A stretch of DNA of 64,000 nt from Chlorokybus atmophyticus. Lineage: Eukaryota > Plantae > Mesostigma and Chlorokybus algae. The stretch is taken from the NCBI GenBank assembly GCA_009103225.1, contig RHPI01003533.1, forward strand, positions 153,474 to 217,473, written 5' to 3'. The notes under the pieces are model-generated. The model ran no database searches. It was not told the origin of the DNA and saw only the letters and a program-made list of their open reading frames with translations. Position numbers and translations under genes: made by a program. Positions 43,652-64,000 of the stretch are shown one piece after another (the first letter of the stretch is position 1; the number at the start of each line of letters is the position of its first letter).

Positions 43652-46395
43652 ATGAGTCTGCAATCACCACCACCACCACAACAACAACCACAACAACAAC
43701 CACAACCACAACCACAACCACAACAGCAACGTACACAGACACAACAACAACAACGCCAGAGCAAGCGTCCAGGCGTGTTCCGTTTGGGTGGCCGGCCCTG
43801 CTGGCGAGTATACATCAGCGATGACTTCAATAAAAGGGCATTCGTCGGTGATTTCGGCAACCGAGAGGAGGCGTTTCAAGCATATAAGCGAGCGCGTTCT
43901 GGGGAGCGTGGCGAAGGTATCCACTCTGACTTTGAGATGATGTGTTCGTTACCTACCAGCACAGAGCAGCAGCAGCGGAGTGGAAGTGAGGTGGATATTA
44001 CAGGCAATCTGCGCAAGCTGGCGCAAGGTAAGGAGTGGGTGGGTTCATGGGACTTGTGCATCTATTTGTGGAGGGCATGTGCTTGTGAGTTTGAGGGGTT
44101 TTGATACTGCTGCTGAGAACATTTGCATGCGTACGTGTGCGTGCGTGTGTCTATGTGTGCATGTGTCTGCGTGCTTGCCCATGCATTGTTGCGCGTGCGT
44201 GCGTGCACGCTGGTGCATGCGCACATGTGCGTGCATATGTGTGTATGCATGCTTGCTTATGGGACCGTCTGTGCACAGAGCGTGCGAGGAGCAACCGTAT
44301 CGTCGCCAACGCATCCAACCCAAACTCACTGCCAGCCGAGAGCCAACATCCCACCCCCACCCCCACTCCCTCCCCCACCCCCAACAACAACACTAATCCC
44401 ACCCACATTCCCGGCGTCACATTCAACCCTCTCACCCGCCGCTTCGACGCGCAAATCGGCTCGGGATCGCACGCCATCGCAAGCGGGAAGATACGTCTCG
44501 GCTCTCACCGATGTCGCTCCGACGCAATCGTAGCGCGTGAGTATGCGCAAGAAGCAAAGGAGAAAGGGATGCCTCATTACTTGTGGAAGAAAAATGGCAA
44601 AATAGGTGGCAGAAAGCGTGTATCAGAGACTGTCTCAGAGACTCATGTCAAGGGTGTGATGTATGAACGGCGACGGGACCGGTATGTTGCTTACATCGGT
44701 TATAATGGTAGGAAGATTCTGTTGGGGGCGTCTTTTGTTACACGTGAGGATGCGGTGCGTGTTCGCAAGCACGCCGAAGCGTGCAAGGAGAAGGGGTTGG
44801 GTTTGGAGGAGTTGAAGAGAAGCATTCAGGAGGTGCGGTTGCGCAGACAGGTTACAGCGAGCAAGGAGAGGATATCATCAAGTGGCAAGCGTCCGCACCA
44901 GATAGGGAGACGTGCACCAGGTGGGGTGTGTGGGGGTGGGTGTGGGGGTGGGTTCCCTCCTCGGTCTCATGCGCACGCACGCACGCATGCATGTAAATTT
45001 GCATGCGCGTGCATGGCCACCTCCCCCACTCATGTGCACTTGTGAACGACGCCAGCATCGGGCCACAAGGGTGTGTGGTTCAACAAGCGCATCAGGCGTT
45101 ACGAGGTGCGAGTTTACATCGCCAGCCACGGCACCGGCTCGGGCAAGTTGATGCGCCTCGGCAAGTACAAGATTCTTGAAGAAGCCGTCAAGGCTCGGGA
45201 CCGGGCAACCGCAGACCTCAACACGAACAGAGGTGGCGTAACACGCACGTGCGCAAGCAGTTACTCACAGTCACGCACATGCATGCACGCGCGCGCACAT
45301 GCAGATGCATTTTGTATGTGCGCATATGTGCATGCGTGCACACATCCACATATCCACGCACATACGCGCACATGTATCACCACCCCCTGTCTTGTTGTGG
45401 TCCTCGTGCTTCAGATTGTATTCACATCCACTCACACTCTCCTTCACATCTCTCTCACAGGGCGTGCCAGTGCTAAGCCACCTCAGGTGCCTCTGCCTCA
45501 ACACCCGCCTCAACTCCAATCTGCCTCAGATGCACTCGCCCGTGCTGAGACTGAGCAGCGTGTGCCTCCCGTCGCGATCGGGTACAGTCGCGCGTACTAC
45601 AACAAGCTACAGCGTAAGTGGACGGCGTACTACAAGACGGGCCCCGGGGAGGCAAATAGACGCTACCTCGGCACTTTTACAAGGTCAGGACAGGAGCCCT
45701 GCCAATGTGTGTGTGCGCGCGTCAAGAGAGTGAGTGAAGTTGTGGTAGATTTGATCGTGTGTGGGTTTCTTTGGCGTGTCAGTGCTGATGCCGCTGTGCG
45801 CGCGATTGAGTTGAAAGAGAAGGAGGAGGAAAAGGAGAAGAAGGAGGAGGAAGAGAGGGAGAAGGAGGAGAAGGAGAAGGAAAAGAAGGAGAAGGAGAAG
45901 GAGAAGAAGGAGAGGGAGAGGGAGAAGGAGCAGGATAAAGAGAAGGAGCAGGAGCAGGAGAGTGAGGGGGAGAAGGGGGAGAAGGCGAGTGAGAGGGTTC
46001 AGAGGTCCGGGATGTCCAGTGTTGCAGCAAAGCGCGTGCATCTGGTGCCAAACACAGCGAGCGTCTTGCCGTGGGAGGTAAATCATTTTCTTTGTCATGC
46101 TGACAAAGATGAGGACACCAGCAATGACAACATGGTCAACAACCAAACTGTCATCGCACGCTGCATCTTTTGCATACACTTGCATGCTTTACTGTATGCA
46201 AGTGTACGTCAAGTGCTGTGTTCACCACAAATGGTTGTCCACGGGGACGCCCACACACATACACACCCACACGCATACACACACAAGCACTCGCATGCAC
46301 AGGTGTGGGTGGGAGATGCTCTTGTGGCCGCGCATGCGAATGTCAATGACGCCGCCAGAGACGCCCTCGCTAGGGAAGCTGCTGTAGTGCAATAA
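43652..46395 (+). CDS. Protein with about five AP2-like DNA-binding domains; start uncertain
   Basis: Repeated units: GVFRLGGRPCWRVYI..VGDFGNREEAFQAY; GVTFNPLTRRFDAQI..LGSH..DAIVAR; GVMYERRRDRYVAYIGYNGRKILLG..TREDA; GVWFNKRIRRYEVRV..LGKY..EEAVKARD; YYNKLQRKWTAYY..RRYLGTF. Confidence 0.7.
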
Positions 46396-46737: not shown

Positions 46738-48963
46738 TCACCTCAACAACTCCACAGCGCCAACGGGCGCAAACAGCCCCGCGGTACTCTTGAGAAACCT
46801 GCCAAACTTTGCGGACTTTGACTTGGACTTGACTTTCTCCTTGCCGTCATGGGGAGAATTGTTGCCGTTGTCTTTGTTGTTGTGTTTGTGCTCTGGTGGT
46901 GACATGCTTACAGCCATGGCGGGCGGGCCTGAGGCGAGTCTCGCGGTAGTGGGTTTGGATACAGACATGCCCGCCTGAAGCAGTGATGCGAGCCACAAGT
47001 CACATGTGCAACAAGAACTGCAACTGAGGCAACGATTGGCTGTCACGTAGCAGTGAGAGGCGTACCAGAGTGTCGCGCAGAGCTTGTGTGGGCGCATCTG
47101 AGTGCGGGACAGACATTGTACGCTCTGCGCACAGCGAACAAAAGGGACTGTGTTACATTATTTGAAGAGACATGGGCTGGGACCTTCGCTATGGGACTTT
47201 GGCTATCAGCTTTCGTAGTGCGGTGACACCCGCACGCACACGCACATGAAATTCGTGTGCTCACATGTACGTTGATGCCTCTCTGTTCATGCATGTGCAT
47301 GCATGCGTGCGTGTCACAAGGCGCAGGTACATACCAACAATCGTTCATGTAGACGCGCCCACACATGCACACATACCAGGCTTGGGCAGTGGAGCCGGAT
47401 AGCTGATCGCTCCTTCCTTCTCATCCCACTTGTCTCTCTGATCATGATTGTCGCCCTTACCAACACCATCGTTGAAGAACACAACATCATCACTGCTGGC
47501 GTCCTCATAAGCACACTCCTTCTCATCCTCATCCTCGGACCCATCGCTGCGTCTGGACACCAACGAGGGCGTGGGCGTGGGCGTGGGCGTGGGCGTGGGC
47601 GTGGGCGTGGGCGGCATAGCTGGCGTGGCTGGCGTGGCTGGCGTGGCTGGCGTGGTTGGCGTCATTGGCAATGTCATTGTCATGGGTGTTGTGGGTGCTG
47701 TCATGGACATTGTTGTCATGGATGTCATGTTGGTGAGGTGGGCTTGCAACGCGGCGGCGCGGCGTAGGGCGGCGTCGCGCTCGGCGGCGAGCTTGCGTAA
47801 GAGGGTTTGACGCTGCTCCTCAAGCTGCTGGAGCAATGCTAGGGTCGCAAACTCATCACCCTCCTGCGTGTACATGCGGGATGATTAATCCCGCAACAAG
47901 GGTTGATGTATACGCGTGTGTATGTGTGAGCGTGTGCATGGGCTTGCGCGTACGGGGCATGTAGGAAGTCCAGTGGATGCGAGGGTGTGCATGTGTTCAT
48001 GTGCATATGTGCATGTGCACGCGAGTGCGTGCGTGTCCATGCACTGTAAGCACGTGCACGTGCGTGCACTCAGGTGCAGTGCAGTTGGTATCTGCCAGTG
48101 TAGACATGCATCTGTGTGCGTGTGAGAGTGCAACATGCATGTTCCAACCAGCCATTTCCAAAGGCTGCGCACCTGATTGTGTGATTGAAAGTCATTAGGG
48201 TTGAACATGCCCCCGTTCGCTGCCGCTGGCACCTGCTGGCTGGGGAGATAACCATTGACAGGAGCAGAGTGGGCCGGCATTGATAGACTGTGCTGAAACT
48301 ACAACAACAGAGACAGTTAGAAAGAGTCCCAGTCAAAGCAATAGTTGCAAATCGACACACGCACACACTCAGACAATGCTGCCGTTGTCAACTCCCATAC
48401 AGGTTGCTTGGAAACTCACATCATGCTTCGGTTCAGCTGCTTCTGCCTCAGGGTTTGGTTCCCACCACGGCGGGGCGGAGGGGGCGTGGCTGTGGTATTG
48501 ATACAGCTCTGCTGGGTGTGAAGCTGAGGAGGAGAATGAAGATTTGCTGCCTATGCTGCCAGCTGAGCTAACAAGCACAGCAGCGGCTGCTGCCCCAAAT
48601 CCCGCTTCCGGCTGCAGCTGCTTGGCTTGGGCCTGGAGTCCAACTTCAGCCATGAGACAGCAGAAAGGGAGCGGGCCTTGCTTACTCGCCCTTGTCCTTG
48701 TGCTTGTCCTTGAGTGTGTGTCGTGGTCTTGACTGCTGCAATTGCCCCTTTTCCTTGCCCTTGTTGCTGACCCTGTCCTGGACGTTGGCGTAATCGTTGC
48801 CCTTGTCCTGGTCCTGGTCCTGGTCCTGGTCCTGGTCTGTGCAATTGACCTGGCCCTGGTGCTTGTTGTTGTCCTTGCCTTGAGCCTGCTGCTGGCTGTT
48901 GATTGACCTCGCCCCTGTCCTTGTCCTTGTCCTTGTCTCCCACCACACCACTGCCCCCGCCAC
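46738..48963 (-). CDS. Spliced low-complexity hypothetical protein (coiled-coil and Thr/Pro-rich)
   Basis: GC-rich open exons with GT-AG ends (LLQQLEEQRQTLLRKLAAERDAALRRA; TPTPTP; KEKVKSKSKSAKFGRFLK). No family recognised. Confidence 0.45.
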
Positions 48964-49830
48964 TGCCCGCCTGCAAGAAAAGCGTTGGTGCTACACTGCT
49001 GCGTCAGGCACACTTTGCATGCCACTTTGTAAATCACATTTCCTGGTTTTTGCATTGTTTTTGAGCCTTTTTGTTCTGAATCTGTTAGAGCATGGAGGAA
49101 TCTTGCCTGAGAGAAGATTCCTTTCTGCGGCTTACTAATGTCAGTCTATTGCCGACTGACATTCCAGCCTGTGACGTGGTGCGCCGACCGTCGGCACGAA
49201 AGGGGTGCAAGCGCCGACGCATGCCTGCTGAGGAACTTCAAATGTATCCATTATGTAATGGAGAGGAGGTTGTTACAATACTACTTATGCATTATTGTAA
49301 GATAGCATGGAGGCAGCAGCAACGTGTCCCCTCGTTCCCTTAACAATAAGAATGATTAGTTGTAGTTGTAGAGTTTATAAAATATCATGTATAAATGCTA
49401 TATTATTATTTCGTTAACTTTTTCATTTGTTTGTTCATGAGGAGGATTATTGTGAATTGATACTTGCAACTATATGATCTGCAGCGTAAGTAACGCGTCA
49501 ATGACTTGGCACACCACAATCACATCGGGTTGACATGTCTACTCTTAATCCATCATCACTATCATGATACACAGTCTATTACGGTGATGAAAATAACGAA
49601 ATGTATGGATAGCACCACAAGCATCATGCCCACCACTTACATAACAAATCAGTTATGAGTATTCATCATCATTGTTAAAATGGAAATTGTAATAATTCCC
49701 GATTACTTAAACCACATCGCATGCACATGCCATAATAGTGTAATTTGTTCATTTTGTTTAGAAAATGATCAAAATCACATATTTCAGCATGCAAAAGATT
49801 GTAAAAGTGTTTAAAGCGTAACTAATCTAC

Positions 49831-50031
49831 TGTCGTGCAACCATGCCTCAACTGCGGGGTATGTCTCGCAGAGGGAGTGCGTACGGTGGAGTGGAGAAGT
49901 GTGAAGAATGGGTAGTGCTGCAGAACAGCTTACGAAGCGCCGCTTCGCAAGCTGCTTGAAGCAGTAAAGAGCTTGGGAGCTGCGATACTTGTGGTGCCAT
50001 CCCTAGGCTTGGTATGAGGCCGTAGTCAACA
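49831..50031 (-). mobile_element. LTR-like repeat, copy 1 (TGTCG...CAACA)
   Basis: Diverged direct repeat of 50681-50913 with TG...CA termini. Confidence 0.6.
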
Positions 50032-50680
50032 AGCTCCTCGACTAAGTATGCATGTGGACAAGCAAGCAGCAATCCTTGAAGTGTAATAATATGTGGTGCA
50101 AGTTTGCTAAGTGGTGCGAGTTTACGTACAGCAAGCACCCACTTAACTGCAAGCTAGTGGATGCCAACAACCAGCATTGTGGTAGTGAAAGACATGCAAG
50201 TACCGTGTTGGGCAGGATGCGATCTAGTCCACAGGCAACGGGGTGGAGGCCACGCCACAAAGTCATTAGCAATGCGCAAGAGAAAAAGGCAGAAAAACCA
50301 AGAGCAGGCAAAGGCAAAGGAGATGGGTATACAGCAAGAGGGGTTCGGCATCAACTCTTACAACTTTTAATCTCACACAAGACAGCATGCATGCACGTGG
50401 TTTGCCTAGGCTAATGGTGACTTTCGGAGGTCTTTAGAGTAACGTCGCCGCTTCCGCGCCAGTCTGCTTACTTGCAACTTACCACCGACCAATTCCTTAA
50501 GGTTTGCTAAAAGAAGGTTTCGGCGAAAGCGGCCACCGCCACTACTCTCGCTTCTCATTGGCTAACACATAAGGTGTCAATGGTCTTGTCACGTTGTTTG
50601 ATATCTTGTTAACTGACTTGACCGATCTCAATGCTAGCGAGAGCGCATAAGTGCGTGCCAAGGGTCAACACCGTAACAGA

Positions 50681-50913
50681 TGTTGTGCAAACAAGCCTCG
50701 ATTGCGGGTATGTCTTACAGAGGGAGTGCGTACAGTGGAGTGCACAAGTGTGAAAAATGGGTAGTGCTGCAATACAGTTTGCAAAGCGAGCAGTAGAGAG
50801 CTTAGGAGCTGCAATACTTGTGGTGCTGAGGTGGTAGGTGCAAGAGAAGGTGGTGAGGGAAAAACAAACTGTGTAGTCCCCTAAGTTTGGTATGAGGCCG
50901 TTGTCACTCAACA
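50681..50913 (-). mobile_element. LTR-like repeat, copy 2 (TGTTG...CAACA); probable 3' LTR of the adjacent gypsy remnant
   Basis: Perfect 5-bp inverted termini. On the minus strand it directly follows a poly-G tract and the integrase-PHD sequence. Confidence 0.65.
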
Positions 50914-50915
50914 AG

Positions 50916-51088
<173 letters not shown>

Positions 51089-51119
51089 NGATGCCACATT
51101 GAAATCAATGACAGCAGGT

Positions 51120-51480
51120 GTGATACAAGATTGCAAGCCTCATGCTTATATTCATAGCAGGAGTCGCACTCCATCAAAGGGCGACGGTTCAAAGCGCAGC
51201 AGGTGCACAACATGGTCCGAACTCGAGGGCGAGGTTTGCCGAGACCTTTGACGTAGGGGAGATGCCAAGGGAAGCAGTTTTGTGCATGGTTCACTTCAAC
51301 GTAATCGGAGGGGTCTCGCAGAGATAAAGTGTTTTATGCGCGTACCACCTTGTATACGATGCCGTAGTTGGCAGGGTCCAGGGTGTTGGTGGTCTGCTTC
51401 TTGCAATATACGTAGTCTCCAATGCAGAACTTGCATGTCTGTGTAATGTAGCCCCCGCTGCGTACGTTTGCACAGCACCA
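51120..51480 (-). mobile_element. Ty3/gypsy integrase C-terminus with PHD finger, pseudogenised
   Basis: One frame reads ANVRSGGYITQTCKFCIGDYVYCKKQTTNTLDP..YKVVRA*..NHAQNCFPWHLP..LCTCC..PLMECDSCYEYKHEAC, with an in-frame TAA at 51336-51334. It matches the F.GDYVY / NC.P.HLP / PHD pattern of green-algal gypsy elements. Confidence 0.75.
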
Positions 51481-52465
51481 CCCTTTATAAAAACTCTGTC
51501 CAACACCTAGCATGCATCTATCATGGCTGACTATGGTCTGGTAGCTACTCCCATGGAGTCTAGCAAGGTTAAAGAAGATTAGATTTCATATTTAGCGCCA
51601 TAGTCTGTCATTCAAATAATAAGTTATTATTTAGCATATCTGGTCCTACCTAGCAGAGCCTGTTTATTTCTCGGCGTGACTCAGTAAACATAAAAGATAC
51701 CCTACCCGCGCTAGTTGTGACCTTATCTTGAACGTCGCATATCTTTCGGCATGACTGAACAGGGACCGAGGGACTGACCCCGCCTAACCCTAACGGAACC
51801 CAACGACTTGGGCCATAAAGGGACTGAGTGGATTGCCGATGCATATCAAGGAGAATTAGTAATGGCGGGCCGCTTGTCGTACGCGATACCGGACTCCTGG
51901 TTCGTCGCAAATTTTACACGGTGACTGAGTAAGGACTGAGGGACTGACTGGTGCCTGAGCCTGCCTGAGCCTGCCTGTTGCTGCCTGAAATATTACTTTT
52001 GGACTGTTGGGTTTGCCGTTGGCTTAAGTGGACTGACGCAGACAGCCGCGGGCCGACAGTGGTTGTCAGTGGCACTAACCGGCCGAGAGTTGTCAACCAG
52101 TTACCCTTTGGTCGATGTGCACAGACGGCCGTTGACCGGTAGTTACGGGCAGCAGACAGCAATAGCCGGCAGTTTCTTTGCCGTTACACTGCTGTTAATA
52201 TGTGACCCTTGCCATTTGACAAAAGTTGGCAATTCTGGCCGTAAGCCAACACTAACATGCCATGCAGCTTGTACAAACCTTGGACTGATTGTTTGGTCTT
52301 GCACCTAAAAGCCCACAATATATACAATGTACGGGCAGTGGTGAGAGTATGTCCACTTACAACTGAGCAGCCGACTTGCGCATGAAACTATCCTATAACA
52401 TTGAGTCTAGCTGTCGGACTCATGCGCAGCTTGTCAACCCGTGGTGCCTGCCTCAGAACTCCTCC

Positions 52466-53339
52466 TCAAACCCCCTCCTCATGTTCCTCCTCCAACGAGT
52501 CTTTTGCTTCAACGCCGGAGTCATCTTCATCCGCTGCCTCGCTCGCTGACAGTACAGCGGCTACTTCGTCCTTCACCTTGAATGTCAGCACCTCGCCGTG
52601 CACGCGCATGCGCTTGATGGTCGCTTTGAGAGTGACCACCTGCATTTGGTAATGCTGTAAGAGTGGCGTGCTGCCAGAGGACTAGCCCATCAGCATACAC
52701 ACGCTTACCTCGTCTTCCGCTTTGTTGCACTCCGCCAGGCAGACAGTCAGCCTGCCGCGCTGCTCTTGGTTCACTCTGACCAACATGGCAATCTGCAAGC
52801 ATACTGCTTAATTACCGCTGGAAACATTAAACTAGGTCATAGATTACCCGTTCGTTTGACTCCGCAGCTTCTCTTTTGCGACTTGTGAGCTCCCGCAAGT
52901 AGAAATAGGCTGTGCATTTGCGAGATTGGTCATGCTGTTCATGTGCATGACACTGGAGGTTGTGCATGAGGGTGTGCATGTCGTATTAACAATGAATGTC
53001 AAGTGCAAGATACTTGAGGCTGTGCATGTGCAAGATAAAAGAACCCTAGCATGTGGCATTGACAGTGCATCGTAACCCACCTTAGTTATGCCAGTCTTGT
53101 TTGGTCCCTTCAATCATGTCGCCGTGGTCGCAGCTGCTGGTGGGTCGGATTTTCTTAGAGGCAGTATTGTGGTGTGCCTTTGCCCACTCGGAGGGGGAGC
53201 CCTGTAAGATATCGCCCGAGTCACTGTTGTCATTGGATGTGCCCTTGGTAGTCTTGGTGGGGTTTGACACCGAGGACACCCCTCCGGCACCCTGCCCGCC
53301 CTGTGCGAACATGGAATTCATCCCGGACCTCGACCACAA
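52466..53339 (-). CDS. Spliced hypothetical gene or relic, divergent from the transposase (coiled-coil, acidic tail)
   Basis: Exons LRELTSRKREAAESNER|IAMLVRVNQEQRG...AEDE|VVTLKATIKRMRVHGE...EEEHEEGV* joined by short (about 55-70 nt) GT-AG introns. The 5' part contains a stop. Confidence 0.4.
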
Positions 53340-53482
53340 TGCCCACTACGCCCCTGGCAGCGCCGCCAACGATCTTCCAAACGCCTCATACCCTCGGCAT
53401 CACGCCCCTGTAAGGGCATAGCTTGGCGGAGCTATCAATGGTGTTTTCATGCGCAGGGGGACTGACATTGCCAGAGTTGTCA

Positions 53483-53673
53483 ATGGTACGAACTGCCATT
53501 GCCATTGTACAAAGGTACCATTTCAATGGTACCTTTGTACAATGCCTATACCTTTTGGCAAAGGCATCTTCGTACCATTGAAACGGTTCAATCAGAATAT
53601 ATATGTATATATATATATCCAGAGACTCACCCTGGACGTGCAATGGCTCGATCGTACCATTATAATGGTACGA
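53483..53673. repeat. ATGGTAC/GTACCAT cluster 1 (6 copies)
   Basis: Hairpin with 20-bp arms at 53503-53544; perfect 22-bp palindrome TCGTACCATTATAATGGTACGA at 53652-53673. Confidence 0.9.
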
Positions 53674-53827
53674 CGGAGCCAGTGACTTGCGGCCAAGTTT
53701 CCCGCCTCTGGCATGCAAGGTTAGCGGTAGCGATGGCGGTGGCGGTGGCGGCGGCGGCGGGTGTGCGTGTTGCTGGATATGATGCAGGTTACATTGGTGA
53801 CACCTGTGTCGACGTTAGTAGTGAGAT

Positions 53828-56800
53828 ATGGGAGTCCTGTGTCCGTATTGCCACATGCGCTTCGCCACACGAAGCTCGGTTTACATGCACATTATTAGCA
53901 GCAGGGTGTGCAAGCAGATCAAGCTGTATGTCGGCCAGCGTCCATTACAGTACGATGCGGGTCATGTTGAACCGGGGAGTTCGATTCAGGATGCTCACAT
54001 GCTTGATGCTGAAGAATTCCTCCAGGAGACACGCGCACAGCAGCAACAAGAGGAGGAGGAAGTGAACGAGGGCTTTCGATGTGTGCGTGTGCCTGAGAAA
54101 CCTGTGGCACGCCAACATGGAAGTGGAGGCGTCCCTTCGCACGCGTCGGAATCCAGGTGGTATGGCTCGGAGCATGCTCTTGCAGTGGCATTCGTGCAGT
54201 GCAACAACGGCCAAGGCCTGTCGGCCTCCGACATGGGGCGGATCATCAAGTGCATCCGAAATGCACACTTCCTGACGGAAGAGCTCCAGTGGGAGACCGG
54301 TGTGCATGCGGCCAGCTACCTCCGGACCACGATTGCTTTCTCTCAGTCTGAGGTGTGTTCACGGTGTGCGGTGCATGTGCTTCAACCATCAGAGCCATGT
54401 CACATATGCACATGCGAGTGTGCTGCCGTATCAGAACTACGTGACGGCTGACCTGCGCAAGCCTAGAGCCCCTGAGGATCAGGACATCTGCGTCACATAC
54501 ATGCCGGCCAAGGTCTGTGAAATGCAGTACCTAATGCAGTATCGATGCAGTATCTATTCTGAGGCCAGCATAGTAAGTAATGCTCTTGGTCGGAGCAGGT
54601 ATGGCTCGCGCGGTTGTATGGCAATCCACATGTTGCCAATGGCTTCAATCGCCAGTACACTGGTGACGAGCACAGCTTTGGCCATCCTTCCACGGGCGAT
54701 TGGTGGAAGGATGTGGAGGTGGATTTGAGGAGAAAGGTGGGGGAAGCGTCCTACTTGGCGCCTGCCATTCTGTACAGTGACAAGACCACGCTGTACAGCG
54801 CGGGCAAGCGCTCTGGCCCTCTGATGGCATCGCTTGCCAACTACAGTTGGGACATGTATGCTAGCAACATGGGGGTTGTTATGATAGCGCTTCTGCCGGT
54901 GATCCACGCAGTGGCCGGGCATCCCACCTGGGCGCAGGGCAAGGAATCGTTCTCCATTCGGAAACGTGAGATTTTTAATGACGCTTTGAATGTAGTGTTA
55001 GGGGATGTGAAGCGGGCGAGTTGGGAAGGTTTGCAGCTCATCGACCCGAATGGCATCGAGCGTCGTGTGTTTCCCGCGCTTGCCAACTACATCAGCGATT
55101 TGCAGGTAGTGGGCATGAATGGTTGTAACCGGATGCAGCCCGCCAGCAAACAGTGCATGGAGGATGTTGTCAGTAGAACATCTGAGTTTGTCGTGTTGTA
55201 GGAGACTGCCTCGCTCGCACGCACTGTGTCGGGCAACCAAACACGACATCCTTGCGATGATTGTCTCGTCACCAAATCAGATCTGTTGGAGATGGATGAG
55301 GACCGGGAATTGAGAACCGAGGCCTTCTACACACCAGCAATACGTCAGCTGCGGGCGGACCTGCATAGCGGTGTTAGGAATGCACGCCAGACAGCCAAGG
55401 CTTTCAAAGAGCACCACTTAATGCATGTCGAGGAGGTAATGGTCAAATTACCGGCATTCGTGAGGATGAATGGCTTTCCGTGAAACCAGGCAATGTGGTT
55501 TGGCAGCAGAATGCACTGTGGGGTTGGCGACAGTCGCGGGTGCCGGGAGCTGACTGCTACTCTCGTCTTGCCCCTGACGCAATGCATGTGCTGGGAGGCA
55601 TCATTGACCACCTGCTTGCTGCTGTGTACGACGCCGCGAAGGAACGAATGCGTCCATCCACGAGACAGATTCTGCAGGCCAGGCACGTCTTTGGTGTTGC
55701 TTTTGTGTTGAACACAAAAGCCAACAACACGTGCTCACGAGCAGATGTGCACAGGCTGAATGCATGCAAGGCGACTCTGCGGGTTTCGCACTTCAAGGCA
55801 CCCACAAGCACAGTAGATTTCTTCCTGTCCGACCACTCCTTTTAGGTGGTGGAGAAAGTGGCGGTGCTGCAGCTGCTGCCGATCCTCGCAGACGGTTTGC
55901 TGCTCAACAGTGAGGGCAACGATTTCTTCACCATTGCTGCCGCATCGCTTGCCCAGTGGAACAAGAAGTTGCTGAAGGCGCATGAACACACAAGAGAGAC
56001 CCTGACCACAGCCGACAACGAGCTGGCTGCCTTCAAAGCTGCAGTGTTGCATCCGCTACTGTCGTCATATTCTGCACAAAAGTCAGGTTGGAAGATCGAG
56101 AAGATGCATCAACTCACTCATTTTGGGCCGGCAATTGTCAGCAGTGGACACCCAGATTGGTTCAGCGCCAACCGCATGGAGCAGACGCACGCCCAAAATA
56201 TCAAACGGTGGGCGCGTGGTGGCAACAACCGGGACTACCAGGCACGTATCCTGACGGCATGGAGCTGTGCGGAATATGTGAGAGAGGATGGCATGGTCGT
56301 GGATCCCGAGATGCGCTCGGTCATGGCGCAGGTGCGGCAGCAGTGCTGTAATGTCATGGAGAAAACGGACAAGTTGCTATGGATGGATGTGCTGTCAAGG
56401 AGGGAGTCCAGCCGGTATTGGAGCGGATCTGCGCGTAGCCGCCAAGTCGCCTTGAAGACTCCATTTGCCGACAAGCTGCCTGCCGCTCTGGACAGCTGGT
56501 TAAGGAGGGAACAACTGGAGTTGGCCGATGGGTGGCATGCTGTTCGCGTGGTGAACGGCGGCGCAGCGGTGTACATGACAACAGGACTCAGCATGGCGCG
56601 CGCAATTGGGATGTTCCATGGGCGGCCTTGGTTCTCTACACTTGAGTTGGAAGGTGATGAGGACGGTGTGAACGTGACGTGGTGGGCTCAGGCACTCCTT
56701 TTTCTGCGCGTGGTGGTGTGGGGTGGTAGCGGCGAGCGCGTGTGGAAGGAGGTCGTGTTTGTCCGCTGGTACACGAAGCTGGATATGACGAGCGACACAA

Positions 56801-56967
56801 AGTGCATCGCTCTGGAATGGGAAAAGTGTCGAGGCGGTCCACATCTCGATGTCGTGACTCTGGAGCAAGTAAAAGGCATTGTCCAGCTGCTCCCCATGTT
56901 TGACAAGGACAGCGCCCGTGTACAAGAGGGCAAGTATTGGGTGAACGTTCACTGCACTTCCACGTGA
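53828..56967 (+). CDS. Plavaka-family transposase with an N-terminal C2H2-like zinc finger; about 5 introns; possible in-frame TAG at 55843
   Basis: CPYCHMRF..HIISSRVC; STGDWWKD; APAILYSDKT; MIALLPV; VFPALANYISDLQ|E; HPCDDCLV; APDAMHVLGGIIDHL; KMHQLTHFGPAIVSSG..FSANRMEQTHAQNIK..NNRDYQ. These follow the Plavaka pattern (TG.WW, IL.SDKT, Y.AD.PE, D.LH, K.H...HY, E..H). Confidence 0.88.
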
Positions 56968-57119
56968 CACATGTACTTGTCTCACTACTCTCAGTTTGGA
57001 GCATATCAGTCAGTTAGGCATTGCTAATCGTATGCTAAGACTTTTGCATGTGGACGTGTACAATACCGGGCAGCTGTCACTGCACAACTGTCACCACAAT
57101 CGAATGATCCATGCAACAT

Positions 57120-58898
57120 TCAACAATCAGTCCGCCGTGTGGCATTAAGCATCAATACAGTGCACCGCACTCGAGCCTCATAGTTCCATGACACAGGAGG
57201 GTAGTCACAGCGCATATCCATTGTTTCAAGCATGAGACGCCCTATACACCCCGCCATTGCGGGAGGAACTGCATTCGCTATGGAAACGGCCGAGGTCATC
57301 CATGGCACTCCCAGCGCTGTTTGCCACGCAGCAATGCCGCCCCTGGTGCTTGGAAGGCCATAGACCGGGTACATCTGCTGTGGCGCGTTTGATGTCACGA
57401 TTGTCTTCTTCGCGCTAGCAGACAAGTGCGGCAATAGCAGTCCAACTGCCTTGCCCGCGTGCGAGCAGCGTGCTGGTGGGGTAGCTACCACTGGCTGTGT
57501 TTCAAACAGACGATGTCGGAAAGTTGATAGGCCAAACATCGTGCCACAAATGGACAGATTGGGTCTGAATGAGGAAGCTGCTCCTGGCACATCCTCAATC
57601 ACAACTTGACCTGGCTTGCAAGCAGCAGACGTCGGACAAGCGGTATCATATCCTGGTGTATCCAGGATGTGCCATGTGCCGCCCGTTGAGGTGCCGGGAT
57701 AGCACCTGAATAGGCCTGGCATGGTGGACTCGCCCAGATGAGCTCGTTCTCGCTCAGCTCTCCTGCACTCAGGGTGCATACATCGCGGTGTATGAAGGGC
57801 AGCGGATACTCAGCGGAGGGACTTATGTCCATCCCGGTCACATCAAAGCCTGCGTGGTATAGACCGACACTGGCACCGCCACTGCCGCAGAATAGGTCGA
57901 GTGCCCTTGGCCCGCGTGTGCGTCCCAGCTTGTTGTCAAATGGCGTGTATGTGGTCAAGGCTGGCCGTGGTGCTGGCCAGGGACTAACAATGATGCCGTA
58001 CGGGCTTACTTTGCGACTGACGTTCTCCCCTCCGGCGCGCAGAACATGGCGTGCCCCGTCAACTGATGTGTACGCGAATACGTTGTGCCCTTTGAAGTTG
58101 ATGGTTTGTGGTCGATCACCGTCATCGAATACTATACGGTGCTGCCCTGCAAAGACATTTTCCATTGCACCATGCATATATGATGCGTCCTCAATCTCGC
58201 ACGCTACGAAGTGATGCTGACCTGACGCTTGCTTGAATGATTCCACAACGCCCGCATACCATTCCCCATCCAGCGGCCAATGCACCATGACACTCACACC
58301 GATCAGCTGCTCGCATCCCAACTTAACTGCGTTCCGCAGCCGATGCAGTGCGCTGTCCAACGGTCGATGGTCTGCCTCCTCTACAGCGGCCAGGGGATGG
58401 AACTGCCCACGCCCACACCGTGCAAGACTGCTCTGAATGCGACAACAGCTTCAACATGCATGAAATAAGCATACGCCCAACATAACATGCAGTGATACGT
58501 CGCGGTCCACTCTTGTGGATTACCTCCACAGCATCCACCACCTGTCCACTAACCACATGTCCCGGTGTTGTCCATGTGAAGAAGCGCATGGGTTCCCCTC
58601 GCCACTCGAAGCATGAGCGCGAGCACGATTCGCACACGCACTGCACGCAATGGAAAAACTCGGGTTCCTTGCACAGCACTTGGCCGAGGCGGCAGCCAAA
58701 CACGTCGACATTGTGTGTGGTGTGATGCCAGCAAGCAGCACAAAAGCCGTGGCACACTGTCTGCACTCGCTGGCATTCGGTCAAGTGTGCTCGCATTTGC
58801 TGCCTACGGCCATTGGCACATACGTACGCATTGCATTGTGGGCACACCAAGCAGGGTCTCCTAGGTGAGGGTGATTCAACTGCTGCCGCCGACATCAT
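57120..58898 (-). CDS. Cys-rich Zn-binding region, Tudor domain and C5-cytosine DNA methyltransferase (phage/actinobacterial type); one frameshift at about 57605
   Basis: Tudor IGVSVMVHWPLDGEWYAGVVESF..|QHRIVFDDGD. Motif I LDLFCGSGG; motif IV WASPPCQAYS. A second frame holds motif VI VIEDVPG, then ICGTMFGL..RHRLFE and LGVPWMT..NAVPPAMAGCIG. The upstream exon is Cys/His-rich; its splice link is not verified. Confidence 0.85.
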
Positions 58899-59033
58899 GC
58901 AAAATAGGAATCGGCACGGCTGCCCACAAACTGAGCGAGACTTTAGGGTATGGGCATCAATTTAGGGTTGCCAGCTTATGAATCCTAAATGGGTCAAACT
59001 TCAAGTGAAGCACGACTGTACCTTATACGCTAT

Positions 59034-59091
59034 TGCAGTACCATGCATGGTACTGCATCAACAGAAATGGTACTCCATCTGTTAATGGTAC
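59034..59091. repeat. ATGGTAC/GTACCAT cluster 2 (4 copies)
   Basis: Perfect 24-bp palindrome TGCAGTACCATGCATGGTACTGCA at 59034-59057, plus copies at 59067 and 59085. Confidence 0.9.
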
Positions 59092-59424
59092 TACAGTACA
59101 AGGATACTCGCATACTACCACGATCGAAGAGTAATACTGTGCTGTCATGCCATGGAACCCAGAGCGCTGTCCGAGTTTGTTGCTGTCAACCACGCTCTAA
59201 ACCAGCGAGGTATGCAAGCCATGCACTGACTGATGCGCCGGGCAGTCATGATACACATGTACAGCCAATGCTTCTAAAACAGCAGATATCTGGTGCACCA
59301 TGCACCATGCTGCAACTATACATGTACCTACATGGTTCACAAGCGTTCAACACAAAACTACAGAACATGCACAATTGGCATCAAGGCGGGGGCCAAATCA
59401 CTGCCGACACGTTGGCGTCTTGCA

Positions 59425-61968
59425 TCAGGCGTGGCGACCAAAACGGGTGAGGTTGCTTGCAGAATGGACACGCTTGTAACTTCTTTGATTTATTTGCCAC
59501 AGTCTTCTGATGTTTTTTGATGCAGACATGGCACATCGCTTTCTTGCAACAGGGCGTCTCCCCATCCGCTGGGGGGGGGGTGGCTCTTCAATGCGACAAA
59601 TCAGCACACATGGTGCACGCGGGTGTGCAAGCTGCCTCTGCCACCAAACTCTGTTATCGCGTCGCAGGCGTAGCGACTCCCATCTAAATGGCGCAGCATA
59701 ACGCTCCACTGCCTGCTCGATCACCTGACGCCCATCTGCCGCCATACACCACCTGCTGGTCTTGGTGGTCTCGTCCAGCATGCGTTCATCCAGGCCCTCG
59801 ACATGGCTGTCGTCACTCGTGTACTCCCCCGCATCGTCATTTTCTTCGAGCTTCCACAGAATCAGCTCGACGTGCCGTATGACATACAGCCACTGCCAGC
59901 CAAAGCATGCCAAGTACAGCTCGAATGGTTTTACTTGCCACCCAGTATGTTTGCTCAGGTAGTGGCACACATCTCGACCCGCAGTAGTCGACATCGACAG
60001 GTACATCTGCTGCAGGTCGAAGTTCTGCTCCGCAGATAGCTCTTGCACATTGCCGGGGTGCTGCGGCAGCAACAACACCATCATATCGAGGACGGCAAGG
60101 GGCAACAACGTATTACGGATGGCCATATCGTGTATGGGTTCCAACCACGGCCAATCCCCAGAGGTCTGTTTAGACCGCATTCTCCGCGTTTGCTCCCACT
60201 TATTGCAAACTTTCGTCACCCACCTCGAGGCATGCCGCATGCGGTGATGCAGCGCGTCTTGGGCGTACTGTAGGGTGATCAACTCCTTTGCACTACGAGT
60301 CAGCCCCTCAAAGCGTCTGCGCGTCGGTGCTTTGAGCTTAGGCAGCTCGTGCCGCACCAGCTGTCTCTTTGGACGATGCTGAGCAGCTACTTGACGCTGT
60401 AAACCCGCCTGTGCCTACTCAGGACACACAGTCAGCCCCAGTGAGGCTTCAAGGCGCTGTGCTTCTTTTAATGTTGTAACGATGCCTCACCTTTCTTTTT
60501 TTGGTCCTGTCAGCGTCCTTTGTTCCAACAACCTTCTTCTTCTTTTTTTGTCACCCTGCACATCCTGGCAGGCGCTCTCCGTGGCACTGTCACTCGGAGG
60601 AGGTAAGGCGTTATCTTCTTGCTCCACAGCCTTGCGCTTGTTGGTTGCCTCCCGTTCCTCCACGACCTCATGTTGCTTAATGAGGTCGAGCATGAAGCCT
60701 TTGTCTTTCAGCGCAGCTTTCAGGACACCTCGATCAATCTCTTTACCAACAAGACAGGCTGAGATCAATGTGGCAAGCTTAGAGGGAGAGGGCGAGCTAC
60801 AGCTGCTTCTTGATGGAGATGCCTTCAGATGGTCAGAGTGCGGTGGCAAGTGAGTCTCCGCGGCAGGAAGGGAGGGTGCTGAATTGGGATTGCGAGCATG
60901 TGGCTGTGGTTGAGGGGAGGCAGGATGTGCAGAACACTCGGCTACTTCTTGCCTAGCGCACGAAGGCGAGGCCTGAGGCGTTGGCGCAGCACTCTGGGTC
61001 ACAGCCGGTGGTAGCGGGGAATTGGCAACGCCATTCCGCCACTCTCCGATCAGGTGTGTTACCTCCGGTGGCACTTCATGCATAGGCCACGACCACTGTT
61101 CGGTGCTTGCAGGCTTGAGGAGCCAAAAGTGTGCTTCTGGCTCATCAGGAGCAGTGTTGCCCACCACCAGGACTAAGTTGGGGGCTTCTTTATTTCCAAC
61201 CCAAAGTGCGCTGCCGGGCCGTGGCACCCACTCCCCATGCTCGCGCTGAACGGTCACGCAGCCAATCAACAAGCCCAGCTTGTTGGCAAACATGGTCATC
61301 TGCAGGTGCTCGACGTACACATCTTTTCTCCGCACGATCTGTCGCACCTTGGCCATGGCTAGGTCAATGTTGCAGTTGATATCAGCCAACATGGTCGCAG
61401 GCAGTTTGTCGTAATACTGCGCCATCTCTCCCGCGGCATCAGTGGCTCTGCAGAAGTCTAGGATATTGCTCGCCACGCCTGCATCGACAGCCTTGGCGGT
61501 GATTTTGCGGAGAGTGTGCCCCCTGCCGTCGTCGTCCATGGTGTCCAGCATGGCCCAAAATCTGCTCGAGCTGGGGCACTTGTGATCATCCAGGACACTT
61601 TGCGCTATGGATGGCCTGGCGCGAAATACACAATGGTAGAAGCAATTACCATCCGTTGGCGCATTGAAGTGGTCCCATGAGGCGAGCTGGCCACCTAGCA
61701 TGACTGATGGCCGTATGCGGATTGCGGCCAGCTCCTCTGATACCTCGCTGGCAGGTGGTGACCCCTGCTGCATGCGCATACAGCACTCACATGGTGTGTC
61801 AAACTGTGGACGGCAAGAGTCACAGTGACTGATAAAGTACCTGAGTTTGGGGCAGACTGCCGGCTTCAACTTGCAGCGGGTGGGGTAAGGTAGGTGCAGA
61901 AGCCACATCGGTTGTTGCATTGTGCTGTGGTCTCGCCGGTGGCGGCAAGAAGGATTGTTGCCCCGCAA
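59425..61968 (-). CDS. Large protein with an OTU-like cysteine protease domain; likely spliced to the 59425-60357 ORF; 5' exons may reach about 63430
   Basis: FNAPTDGNCFYHCVFRA (OTU Asp-Gly-Asn-Cys), YVEHLQMTMFANKLGLLIGCV, EAHFWLL (His). Donor AAAG|GTGAG near 60490 and an acceptor near 60400 lead into an open 310-aa frame. Confidence 0.7.
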
Positions 61969-63480
61969 TCACCGGTGCTGCTCGTGGAGGAGATGGCAGT
62001 GCACGAAGGACTGGTGCCGCGGAAGGTGGTTGCGCTCTGGCTGGGAGGGGAGCAGGAGCTGCAGGTGAGACCACTTGTGCATGCAGCAAGGGGGGCTGTA
62101 TACAGGACCCAGGATAAGATGGCTCACAATGTTGCAAAGGACGAAGATAAGCTTATGCAGTGCCTGACGCATTGTTACCAAGGCACGAGCATAAAAGACA
62201 GCGACTTACTTCAATGGCCCGTGGGCTACATGGAGCAGGGGAAGCCATGGGGGCTGACAAGGTGGTATTAGCTGCACTCTCCCCACCACCCTCGATGGCA
62301 GACTCGTCACGGAGCTCTTAAGCCATGGGCACATCATGCGCCACTGCCCCAATGGACATGTCGGGATTCAACAGGCCAACATGCATGTTAAACTGATGCC
62401 GCATTGCCGCCGCGCCCATCAGCAAGTGGGATTGAAGGACCAGTTGATGGGATTGAATCCAGGCTTGCATAGGAGCTCCAACAGGACTTAGTGCACTGTG
62501 GTGCTGTCAACCAATCACATGTGGGTTAGCTGCATGCTTGCGACACAGCAATTGCAATAGTCAACTGTGTCACACCGTCATCAGTTGGTTGCTTCGAACA
62601 GTCACCTGCGGCTTGCTGGTTGATGCACGAATGATTGCATGGACTGCGTCATTGCTGATTGATGCACTATTGGTTGAATGCCGGACGAATGGCCACGCGC
62701 TCCTGTGCTCAAACCCAGCCTACTTTGTTCGGTACGCGCGCGCGACTTCGCACGCTCACGCACATCCTAGCATGCAAAGGTAGGCATGCATTCGAGCCGA
62801 CATTGCAGTCAACATGCACAGCGAGATTGGCAACAACATACCGCCGCCCAGCTCTGTCTATCTGCTCTTGCTTCCGCAATGTCGGCTTGACTGTAGGGTG
62901 GGTATGGGTGAATAGTGGAGGCCTGCAGCCACGCTACATATATCACATGGACTGCGCTAAAAAACAAATTGCTCTTGCAAGGAAATGCATGTGACTGTTG
63001 AGCGTACCTCTGCATTCCTTTGTGCTTGTTCCCACAGCCGCAGCTGGTCCCGCATGGTTCTGACAAGGGGCTCCAAGGACTGCAGCTCCTGATCCACTCC
63101 CTGTTGCAGAAAGCGAGCCACCAAGCAGCTCTCGATGTGAAGATGGTCTTTAATGGCTTGCCTGCTGGTTTGTCCAATGTTGGTGATGTATGTTGGACAG
63201 CCCCATTGCTAACGCCTGCCATGATCCATGACGTGGCGACCGGTAGTAGCTGGCTTCGCTGCTTGAACTCTTACGACCACAACTTCTCGCAAGATGTGCC
63301 ACGCCGCCGCCGCCGCCGCCTCCTCCAACTCCTGGTCCTCCGCCTCCTAGTCGAACCCAGGCCCATCAAGCCTGACATTCGACCCGTCATCGACCTGGTG
63401 CCCCTGCGTGTTATCATCCGGCCATCAATGAAGCGTGTTTGGGTGAGTGCATGCTAACTCCCATTTGGGCTGATCGAGCA

Positions 63481-63640
63481 ATGCCTCTGTCGTACCATGG
63501 ATGGTACGACAGAGCCATTGTACGGCAATCGCTGGGGTTGGACGAGAGATGCCTCTGTCGTACCATAAATGTTACGACACAACCATTGGTAACAATGGTT
63601 GTACGAAGCATGCATGGCACGAATGCATAAGTCGTACCAT
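63481..63640. repeat. ATGGTAC/GTACCAT cluster 3 (4 copies)
   Basis: Hairpin with 14-bp arms CTCTGTCGTACCAT-GG-ATGGTACGACAGAG at 63485-63514; 18-bp direct repeat ATGCCTCTGTCGTACCAT at 63481 and 63549; another copy at 63634. Confidence 0.9.
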
Positions 63641-63822
63641 CAACCATAGGAGCAAGGACGCACTACAAGTGCGACTCTAGTGCGGGACTCTAGACGTTCA
63701 AAACCGCCTCATTTTCGTTTTCGCGCCTCATACATTCGGGCGGGCCAACCGGCGGCGGCAGCGTTGGAGGCGGCAGCGCCACTTACAGCTAAACAGGCGG
63801 CACCCGACTATCAGTTGGAGAG

Positions 63823-64000
63823 ATGCCTCGTGGTCCATCCGTAAGTGCACCTCGTCGTGGAGGTCGGCGCCAGTTGTCCACATTGCCCCCAGTGTTCAAC
63901 CAGGCAACCGTCGCCAACCAATCGCAGCAAGACCCCGCGCTAACGCCCAGCACATCACAACAACTCCACCTGACACCGCAGTCGCAAGGGCAAGCTAGAC
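63823..64000 (+). CDS. Start of an ORF running off the window
   Basis: MPRGPSVSAPRRGGRRQLSTLPPVFNQ... stays open to base 64000; too short to identify. Confidence 0.3.
   Translation, partial: MPRGPSVSAPRRGGRRQLSTLPPVFNQATVANQSQQDPALTPSTSQQLHLTPQSQGQAR

Follow-up and report, generated by a model that had tools for sequence, protein, structure and literature searches.

The window analysed here, 64,000 nucleotides of a contig from Chlorokybus atmophyticus, raises the question whether a Plavaka-type transposase gene and two neighbouring genes, one for a C5 DNA methyltransferase and one for an OTU-like protease, are parts of one mobile element, and where such an element begins and ends. An earlier note had proposed a single mobile unit with all three genes between positions 53480 and 63640. 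We consider it likely, taking the explanation as a whole, that the stretch represents a single, slightly damaged copy of a multi-copy giant Plavaka-type cut-and-paste DNA transposon of more than 12.1 kb, belonging to an autonomous family with chromatin-modifier cargo, and we place this Plavaka element in the CACTA/Mirage/Chapaev (CMC/EnSpm) group. Its gene set would comprise an intron-bearing transposase gene, a convergent gene for a Tudor–methyltransferase fusion, an OTU-like gene which is probably spliced to a 310-aa domain, and at least one more gene.

The transposase gene (53828–56967, forward strand) was delineated by a Pfam match together with reading frames and splice sites. The profile PF18759 matches at 54614–55201 above its cut-off (68.4 versus 26.3 bits, E 8.3e-19, profile positions 74–228 of 325), which bears out the Plavaka transposase of the earlier note and its orientation. 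The proposed exons are 53828–54352, 54599–55105, 55202–55435, 55507–55746 or 55507–55842, and 55846–56967; the in-frame TAG at 55843–55845 either closes an intron of 63 or 99 nt, which would start at 55783 or 55747, respectively, or is a stop. An intron of 26 nt (54573–54598) was rejected as too short, and the 246-nt intron 54353–54598 accounts for the frames. Candidates for the DDE residues lie in exons 2 and 3 (YSDKT, LIDPNG, SDLQ/E) and are followed by HPCDDC (CxxC); they were picked by eye. The 373-aa C-terminal ORF of the transposase found no homologues in a word-index protein search, whose length window leaves out full-length transposases, and a metagenome scan with the C-terminus yielded no relatives.

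To follow the element beyond this single copy, contigs from public runs (X1, X3, and X5) were aligned over 51701–57700. In run X3, 419 contigs align with 85–100% identity, and all identity classes are represented. The summed contig depth in this run, which is not convertible to copy number, jumps from 9.5 at 51701–51900 to 400 at 51901–52100 and is 140–480 from 51901 through the transposase gene and the 3′ half of the methyltransferase gene. At the break point 51902/51903 six X3 contigs and one X5 contig have loose ends with disagreeing flanks, and one X1 contig begins exactly at 51903. The X1 contigs are colinear over 51903–57700 without any piece entering unlike sequence, and none of them lies on the flank 51701–51900. 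These alignments show that the family is repeated, that it has a precise common left end at 51903, and that the methyltransferase gene is included. The sequence at the left terminus is CGTCGCAA...; the terminus with its subterminal region (51903–52290, forward strand), recognised by the depth jump and the loose ends, starts with CGTCGCAAATTTTACACGGTGACTGAG... and contains GGACTGA and TGCCTGAGCC repeats (tandem unit). A non-coding 5′ part follows (52291–53482), in which no ORF is longer than 106 aa, the X3 depth is 146–460, and the X1 contigs are colinear at ∼98.7% identity.

The borders originally assigned to the unit, 53480 and 63640, are thus refuted: the element begins at 51903, and its right end falls beyond position 64000. 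A search for a right terminus with the left end in reverse complement found no match anywhere in the window. A further ORF which starts at 63823 on the forward strand (63823–64000) is still open at the window end, so that the element continues beyond it and is not delimited on this side. As to multiple copies with common ends, the shared left end holds, with at least seven contigs from two runs leading into differing flanks; the window contains neither an inverted copy of this end, as terminal inverted repeats would require, nor a target-site duplication. No second copy of any element gene is present within the window, and an Rfam scan of 48000–64000 gave no matches.

Is the methyltransferase gene cargo of this transposon or an ordinary host gene beside it? 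Its depth equals that of the transposase gene, and one X1 contig of 2521 nt, which runs from 56008 to past 57700 at ∼98% identity, bridges the 3′ end of the transposase gene and most of the methyltransferase gene. On these grounds we regard the gene as transposon cargo. That the methyltransferase and OTU genes are host genes next to a chance Plavaka insertion appears highly improbable. Their introns do resemble those of host genes, and the protein searches found no annotated homologue of the Tudor–methyltransferase fusion elsewhere, but the 3′ half of the methyltransferase gene has the repeat depth of the transposase and is found on many contigs of differing identity, the transposase starts 1.9 kb downstream of the family's left end, and a frameshift of this copy (see below) is absent from other copies, as expected of a decaying repeat. 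Of the single mobile unit, the transposase and the Tudor–methyltransferase are hence upheld by equal depth, the bridging contig, and the common left end with varied flanks; the firm OTU call is not.

The methyltransferase gene (57120–58898, reverse strand) was modelled as a protein of 537 aa with two proposed introns (58523–58433 and 58221–58147) and combines a Cys/His-rich, zinc-finger-like region, a PDS5C-type Tudor domain, and a small C5 DNA methyltransferase. The methyltransferase, likewise correctly predicted at the outset, matches PF00145 (E 5.7e-5) and PHROG 363 "DNA methyltransferase" (E 1e-19), and phmmer returned 692 proteins at E ≤ 1e-10. Motifs I, IV, VI, VIII, and X are visible: motif I reads DLFCGSGG, motif IV with the catalytic cysteine ASPPCQ, and motif VI VIEDV, that is EDV versus ENV, while FRHRLFE in the motif VIII region and ANAVPPA in the motif X region align with relatives. 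Conserved blocks align over the full methyltransferase length with the relatives P0003, P0005, and P0006. Between motifs IV and VI, more precisely between LLLASQVK and VIEDV, the reading frame switches. All X1 and X3 contigs covering the site have an extra A, which restores the frame, so that this copy has a deletion of 1 nt between 57602 and 57603. Alternatively, an assembly error in a TTT run could produce the frameshift. Splicing out the stretch between motifs IV and VI is excluded, as the relatives align through it. In addition, the X1 and X3 copies contain CTA behind 54816, and the corresponding 3-nt deletion in the transposase gene of this copy would remove a codon in a conserved transposase motif. 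Judged from the methyltransferase frameshift and the transposase codon loss, this copy appears to be decaying, and it would then depend on other copies.

The Tudor domain of the methyltransferase gene, also part of the earlier proposal, is confirmed by a match to PDB entry 7DE9, chain A (E 1.2e-4, query residues 13–55); the entry was checked and is the Tudor domain of Arabidopsis thaliana PDS5C bound to H3K4me1. After removal of the proposed 75-nt intron the domain reads VESFKQASGQHRIVFDDGD and follows the pattern of the PDS5C Tudor. Candidate cage aromatics, chosen by eye, are W (VHWP), Y (EWY), and F (IVFDDGD) where PDS5C has aromatics. The Cys-rich exon has no matches in Pfam, NCBIfam, or PHROGs, and the protein atlas offers only generic zinc-finger look-alikes, all below 0.9. 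A viral scan with the methyltransferase found only ∼50%-identical methylase domains.

The closest relatives of the methyltransferase bear inserts of a methyl-CpG-binding domain (MBD), and one of them is located on a giant-virus-like contig. The conserved blocks that it has in common with P0005, P0006, P0132 (Chromochloris zofingiensis), and P0003 begin with motif I and extend as far as the C-terminal YPP motif (phmmer E values between 3e-22 and 3e-14). In these relatives the reader is a methyl-CpG-binding domain, which is found inside the enzyme (P0005, P0006, and P0132) or encoded by the next gene (P0003). The present methyltransferase lacks the MBD insert and has a Cys-rich region and the Tudor domain at its N-terminus instead. 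Common to both types is the coupling of a reader of a chromatin or DNA mark to the writer. This clade of methylases seems to have acquired readers more than once, MBD in the viral and algal relatives and Tudor here.

The third gene is less certain. An ORF of 493 aa (60487–61968, reverse strand) contains the Cys box DGNCFYHC and, by eye, a candidate His box AHFWLL of an OTU-like cysteine protease. The ORF matches no Pfam family even at E ≤ 10, and none in NCBIfam or PHROGs. The stretch PTDGNCFYHC aligns weakly with the Cys box of the OTU domains of nairovirus L proteins (E 0.24), and two look-alike clusters in a language-model protein atlas (0.93 and 0.91), with OTU in 20–72% of their members, include Nucleocytoviricota. 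Word-index protein searches with the whole ORF and with the OTU core found no homologues, nor did a metagenome scan with the ORF and a viral scan with the core find relatives. Single-sequence AlphaFold models are poor (mean pLDDT 40.3 for the OTU core and 37 for the 310-aa ORF). An OTU-like deubiquitinase is probable on this weak evidence. The unqualified assignment as an OTU protease does not stand, as the profile PF02338 remains unmatched at E ≤ 10; all three genes exist at the places given in the earlier note, but of these the transposase on the forward strand and the convergent Tudor–C5 methyltransferase on the reverse strand are confirmed, and the reverse-strand OTU ORF lacks a Pfam match.

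The OTU ORF has its stop codon within a canonical AG/GTGAGG donor, and therefore the 310-aa ORF (59425–60357, reverse strand) is probably joined to it as the last exon of the OTU-like gene through an intron at 60490–60365 (GTGAGG...AAAGAG). The 310-aa ORF belongs to no family in Pfam, NCBIfam, or PHROGs. On the other side, 61969–63478 (reverse strand) probably harbors upstream exons and the 5′ region of the OTU-like gene, as a three-frame reading reveals open stretches with GT donors; the ORFs within 61969–63457 gave no Pfam, NCBIfam, or PHROGs matches.

Whether the OTU-like gene travels with the transposon can be judged from k-mers. The share of 31-letter words is 0.57–0.58 over 53700–63400 in three runs, compared with an expected share of (1−0.0165)^31 = 0.60 at a divergence of ∼1.65%, a value taken from the contig-covered part (51701–57700), with the prediction extended to the whole 9.7 kb. 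As observation and prediction match, the OTU part is probably at the same divergence as the rest, and we infer from this word share that the OTU gene rides along with the element.

The nearest methyltransferase relative, P0003, lies on a contig with further giant-virus-like genes (mRNA triphosphatase, TBP, topoisomerase II, and ABC1 kinases), its MBD gene being adjacent, and this, together with the Nucleocytoviricota among the OTU look-alikes, would be in line with an endogenised giant-virus fragment in place of transposon cargo. We regard such an origin as extremely improbable, since the region has introns of spliceosomal type, a plant-type Tudor domain, and a Plavaka transposase, the unit is short, repeated, and sharp-ended, and Pfam scans of the region revealed no further viral hallmark.

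The palindromic motif GTACCAT/ATGGTAC occurs 21 times in the window (6.7 ± 2.4 in simulations), with up to six occurrences within 250 bp versus a simulated maximum of two, and 14 of the 21 fall in three clusters, with their cores at 53483–53671, 59038–59091, and 63492–63640. Cluster 1 (53483–53685) has six cores in palindromes of 44–52 nt and ends 157 bp upstream of the transposase ATG, cluster 2 (59018–59091) lies 140 bp upstream of the methyltransferase ATG, and cluster 3 (63479–63641) is upstream of two genes, 183 bp before the ATG at 63823 and also before the divergent OTU-like gene. The motif is thus strongly non-random, as claimed, but does not recur in every spacer: none was found in the 3′–3′ spacer between the transposase and methyltransferase genes, and none between the OTU ORF and the 310-aa ORF. 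Nor does it mark spacers or ends of the unit; the clusters are instead positioned 140–183 bp upstream of three start codons.

The clusters bear on the possibility that the locus is composite, with a Plavaka element next to an independent mobile cassette of the Tudor–methyltransferase and OTU genes, perhaps with ends of its own, which moves between transposons and whose old junctions are the palindrome clusters. The position of cluster 2 in the middle of the unit agrees with this proposal, and a second terminus fragment, 76% alike, at 51733–51900 shows that insertions pile up at this place. Still, we hold it to be unlikely: depth and divergence stay even all the way from 51903 across the methyltransferase gene, the bridging contig of another copy has no loose end between the transposase and methyltransferase genes, and the clusters fit promoters better than junctions because all three have the same distance to a start codon. 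In the single-element reading, which we prefer, the clusters would be putative common regulatory or protein-binding sites that co-ordinate the expression of the element genes. In En/Spm (CACTA) elements, subterminal protein-binding repeats overlap the promoter. The likeness consists in short motifs in both orientations near the transposase promoter and in a related transposase superfamily; the palindrome clusters described here differ in lying 1.6 kb inside the left end and before cargo genes, as putative binding sites.

Introns of 71–246 nt can be drawn in the element genes from reading frames and splice sites, so that the short introns of the earlier note are possible as models; the public-run contigs aligned on 51701–57700 yielded neither a spliced nor a clearly transcribed read. 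That these introns lack the CA/TG microsatellites of the host is a meaningless contrast, as the whole window contains only four such arrays.

What might the cargo do? In intact copies the predicted Tudor domain would bring the methyltransferase to H3K4me1-like chromatin, and the element would write its own 5mC, most likely as a means of shaping the state of its own chromatin. A more far-reaching proposal, which we put forward tentatively and consider rather doubtful, is that intact copies make an active enzyme whose C5 methyltransferase, derived from a virus, is directed by the PDS5C-type Tudor domain to H3K4me1 chromatin, producing gene-body-like 5mC on the element itself or on host genes, that this activity steers host silencing together with the OTU-like deubiquitinase, and that enzymes encoded by transposons are a significant source of the methylome of the alga.

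Giant Plavaka elements with the accessory genes PAG1–3 have been described in the red algae Bostrychia moritziana and Chondrus crispus, and like the present element they are well above 10 kb, multi-copy, and mostly degenerate (bioRxiv 10.1101/2025.02.11.637652). Each carries several accessory genes with a predicted role in DNA or chromatin modification, and in each, inverted-repeat arrays adjoin an accessory gene. The cargo is different: an N6-adenine methylase and SET protein and a ParB and 2OG-oxygenase protein in red algae, a Tudor–C5 methyltransferase and an OTU-like protease here. None of the PAG domains (N6-adenine methylase, SET, ParB, 2OG-oxygenase) turned up when the long ORFs of the unit were all scanned with Pfam. 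The hosts differ as well, red algae on the one hand and a green-alga-like genome on the other.

In fungi, Plavaka and KDZ transposons are reported to be associated with TET/JBP dioxygenases (Iyer et al. 2014; PMC12730594). There, too, an enzyme that acts on cytosine methylation accompanies the Plavaka-type transposase. The fungal cargo, however, removes or oxidises 5mC, whereas the predicted cargo described here would write it, and no TET/JBP domain was seen in the element. Retrotransposons of dinoflagellates and of the charophyte Klebsormidium carry DNMTs, for which self-methylation was proposed (de Mendoza et al. 2018, PMC5890265). Here as there, the gene for a C5 cytosine methyltransferase is part of the mobile element itself. 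Their enzymes are Dnmt3-type or orphan DNMTs inside a polyprotein; in our case a DNA transposon has a separate gene for a small virus/phage-type methyltransferase fused to Tudor.

Giant algal Plavaka elements with accessory genes are thus already known, and what is new is the cargo of a Tudor–C5 methyltransferase and an OTU-like protein. Transposons are normally the targets of DNA methylation. If our reading is true, this usual picture would be turned around for DNA transposons by a cut-and-paste element equipped with a cytosine methylase of its own, which a histone-mark reader directs; so far, element-encoded cytosine methylases are on record for retrotransposons only (PMC5890265). Giant Plavaka elements with chromatin cargo, recently described from red algae and fungi, would then also occur, with different cargo, in a green-alga-like genome. 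The methylase clade with its different readers would offer a natural series for the study of how de novo methylation is targeted, and the hypothesis is directly testable with methylome data and recombinant enzyme.

The transposase placed on the forward strand by the earlier note is borne out, as the five open stretches found there by an ORF scan (53828–56967, frames 2, 2, 2, 1 and 1) include a match to the Pfam Plavaka family (PF18759) at 54614–55201 with 68.4 bits and E 8e-19, well over the cut-off of 26.3 bits. Read from the sequence, canonical GT..AG pairs would join these stretches to a gene of about 875 codons, which starts with a weak C2H2-like finger and has exons at 53828–54352, 54599–55105, 55202–55435 and from 55507 onward, separated by introns of 246, 96 and 71 nt. 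Joining exon 2 to exon 3 restores ...ANYISDLQ followed by ETASLARTVSGNQTRHPCDDC, which, judged by eye, we take to be the D..E plus CxxC arrangement of CACTA/Mirage/Chapaev-group transposases. An in-frame TAG at 55843–55845 is the tail of a pyrimidine-rich TTTTAG and could therefore either close an intron of 63 or 99 nt (donor 55783 or 55747) or be a genuine stop.

On the reverse strand the gene at 58898–57123, delimited by reading frames and by Pfam, PDB and PHROG matches, encodes the Tudor domain and C5 methyltransferase that had been proposed. Its Cys/His-rich exon 1 belongs to no family, and its look-alikes in the atlas are all generic zinc fingers, below 0.9. A 91-nt intron (58523–58433) separates this exon from a domain matching the Tudor of A. 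thaliana PDS5C (PDB 7DE9, E 1.2e-4), a structure solved with H3K4me1 bound, and cutting out a second, proposed intron (58221–58147, 75 nt, GT..AG) yields VESFKQASGQHRIVFDDGD, which matches the PDS5C pattern. Downstream follows a compact methyltransferase with DLFCGSGG (motif I), ASPPCQ (motif IV), VIEDV (motif VI, with Asp in place of Asn), FRHRLFE (VIII) and ANAVPPA (X). It matches PF00145 (E 5.7e-5) and PHROG 363 'DNA methyltransferase' (E 1e-19), and a HMMER pass over 1.84 billion representatives gave 692 proteins at E<=1e-10, chiefly enzymes of 200–250 amino acids.

Between ...LLLASQVK and VIEDV the reading frame of the methyltransferase switches. An intron at this point is ruled out, as the relatives align straight through it, and thus we read the change as a frameshift. 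All contigs of the public runs X1 and X3 there carry an extra A behind 57602 relative to the window, which changes the coding strand from AAGTTGTGATT to AAGTTTGTGATT and restores ...ASQVKFVIEDVPGA..., and all have CTA inserted behind 54816, giving the transposase core one more Tyr, GKRSG(Y)PLMASLAN. Thus, the window copy departs from the majority form, by about 1.5%, and has two lesions, the methyltransferase frameshift and the loss of a transposase codon. The frameshift, which falls in a TTT run, could instead stem from misassembly. The assembly has a long C tract with an N at 51073–51093 and a 180-N gap at 35340–35519, and single-base indels such as that at 57602/57603 should therefore be read with caution.

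Are these genes parts of one mobile unit, as suggested? Logan contigs from four public runs were aligned to 51701–57700 at a likeness of at least 85%. X3 contributed 419 contigs in every identity class, 108 at >=99%, 164 at 95–99%, 108 at 90–95% and 39 below 90%. Their summed depth rises from 9.5 over 51701–51900 to 400 over 51901–52100 and stays at 140–480 up to 57700, with a sole dip in the palindrome/AT-repeat stretch 53501–53700. Loose ends at 51902/51903 occur on six contigs of X3 and one of X5, and their sequences disagree with each other; one X1 contig begins exactly at 51903. Thus, 51902/51903 has the hallmarks of a terminus shared by repeats of one family at differing insertion sites. 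The 3′ half of the methyltransferase (57077–57700) is as deep as the transposase, and a single X1 contig of 2521 nt (56008 to about 58527, ∼98% identity) reaches from the 3′ end of the transposase across the 150-nt spacer and through most of the methyltransferase. X1 is colinear over 51903–57700 with a divergence of 1.2–2.0% and no piece entering unlike sequence; no X1 contig covers the flank 51701–51900. Depth and the bridging contig therefore place both genes in one unit. For the OTU gene we infer this from word share: over 53700–63400 it is 0.57–0.58 in three runs from two studies (run search), close to the 0.60 expected from the measured divergence of about 1.65%, (1−0.0165)^31, and thus the entire 9.7 kb is probably kept at this divergence.

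X5, the sole run that may be RNA, its kind being guessed, gave three small contigs on 51701–57700. Small contigs of this run are 95–98% alike to the 5′ non-coding part (53170–53352) and transposase exon 1 (54005–54308), a possible hint at transcription of family members. The aligned contigs show no joints and hence no evidence of splicing.

The borders proposed previously, 53480–63640, have to be moved. The left end, with the CGTCGCAA terminus proposed before for another copy, has independent support from the reads (51733 and 51903 lie in the aligned stretch); it reads CGTCGCAAATTTTACACGGTGACTGAG... from 51903, and next to it come GGACTGA and TGCCTGAGCC repeats and then 1.9 kb devoid of long ORFs. 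Within the 64-kb window this terminus has no reverse-complement copy, and a further forward ORF begins at 63823 and meets no stop before the window ends at 64000. Therefore the element runs off the window, and its right end, and with it any TIR pair and target duplication, would lie beyond 64000. A 16-nt direct repeat (CGCCTCATAC..TCGG, 88% alike, 53382–53397 and 63724–63739) brackets the stretch first proposed and is probably due to chance, since the true left end is at 51903. A second copy of the left terminus (CGTCGCATATCTTTCGGCATGACTGAAC..., 76% alike) with only low depth lies at 51733–51900, 170 bp before the real end, and may be what remains of a related element, either insertion target or neighbour of the present copy. 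Further upstream, two adjacent forward ORFs (43652–45045) have weak AP2-domain matches under the Pfam cut-off (E 1e-3 and 4.5e-3), which would fit a plant or green-algal host gene.

The third gene, on the reverse strand, is probably OTU-like but is not established as an OTU protease. Searches of Pfam, NCBIfam and PHROGs with its ORF of 493 amino acids (61968–60487) returned nothing, also under permissive thresholds. In PTDGNCFYHC it has a box that can be aligned to the catalytic Cys box in the OTU domains of nairovirus L proteins (E 0.24–0.64), AHFWLL may be a His box, and the language model yields look-alikes at 0.93 (179 features shared) and 0.91 (174 features shared), PF02338 being carried by 20–72% of the members of their clusters. 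A single-sequence fold model was useless (pLDDT 40), and protein, viral and metagenome searches found no homologues for a better one. The stop codon falls within a canonical AG/GTGAGG donor, and an acceptor 126 nt downstream allows an in-frame join to a 310-aa ORF (60357–59425); thus, one gene probably comprises both ORFs. The shorter ORF is without recognisable family or fold. Upstream, open stretches with donors (61969–63460) look like further 5′ exons, and a domain search of them gave no matches.

The recurring palindromic motif is real, with 21 occurrences of GTACCAT/ATGGTAC in the window against 6.7 ± 2.4 expected from first-order simulations, and as many as 6 in a 250-bp interval, where the simulations reached 2 at most. 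The recurring core of about 44 nt reads CAATGSCTC..TCGTACCAT...ATGGTACGAC.GAGCCA.TG, and all eight occurrences of the forms CGTACCAT/ATGGTACG fall in the two outer clusters. Contrary to what had been stated, the motif is not present in every spacer, for the 3′–3′ spacer 56967–57120 has no cluster. Each cluster ends ahead of a start codon, 157 bp before that at 53828 (forward), 140 bp before that at 58898 (reverse) and 183 bp before that at 63823 (forward), and the third also precedes the divergent OTU-like gene. We reject them as end markers and read them as shared promoter-proximal sites, which might be bound by a host factor or by a protein of the element, the transposase having its weak finger.

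The best non-tandem matches of the methylase are the proteins P0003, P0005 and P0006 (E 3e-22 to 4e-20); next comes P0132 (3e-14), a Chromochloris zofingiensis gene model, and all four share blocks with it from motif I to the C-terminal (D/N)YPP motif. The contig of P0003, which is giant-virus-like, also encodes an mRNA triphosphatase, TBP, topoisomerase II, ABC1 kinases and a YqaJ nuclease, and a methyl-CpG-binding-domain (MBD) gene directly follows P0003. P0005, P0006 and P0132 carry an MBD insert between motifs VIII and X, whereas the window enzyme lacks it and has a Tudor module instead, a fusion not found in the best 150 of 2948 hits. The clade seems to gain mark readers repeatedly (P0005, P0006, P0132; locus L005, 9239–10534).

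Plavaka elements are reported from chlorophytes and streptophyte algae (PMC13519894; PMC12636532). Giant ones of 17–19 kb in red algae carry three accessory genes (N6-adenine methylase plus SET; ParB plus 2OG oxygenase), adjoined by inverted-repeat arrays (10.1101/2025.02.11.637652). TET/JBP genes are associated with fungal Plavaka/KDZ elements (PMC12730594), retrotransposons of dinoflagellates and Klebsormidium have captured C5 methyltransferases (PMC5890265), and virus-derived 'orphan' DNMTs of eukaryotes have been discussed (PMC12344493). None of the papers searched joins Plavaka, Tudor and methyltransferase in the sense seen here. Thus, the window holds one worn, incompletely contained copy of an element which we regard as new in its combination of Plavaka and Tudor-methyltransferase, within the already known kind of Plavaka elements with accessory cargo. 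Our analysis contributes evidence from reads for the left end and for the methylase being inside the repeat, as well as the promoter-proximal position of the palindromes.
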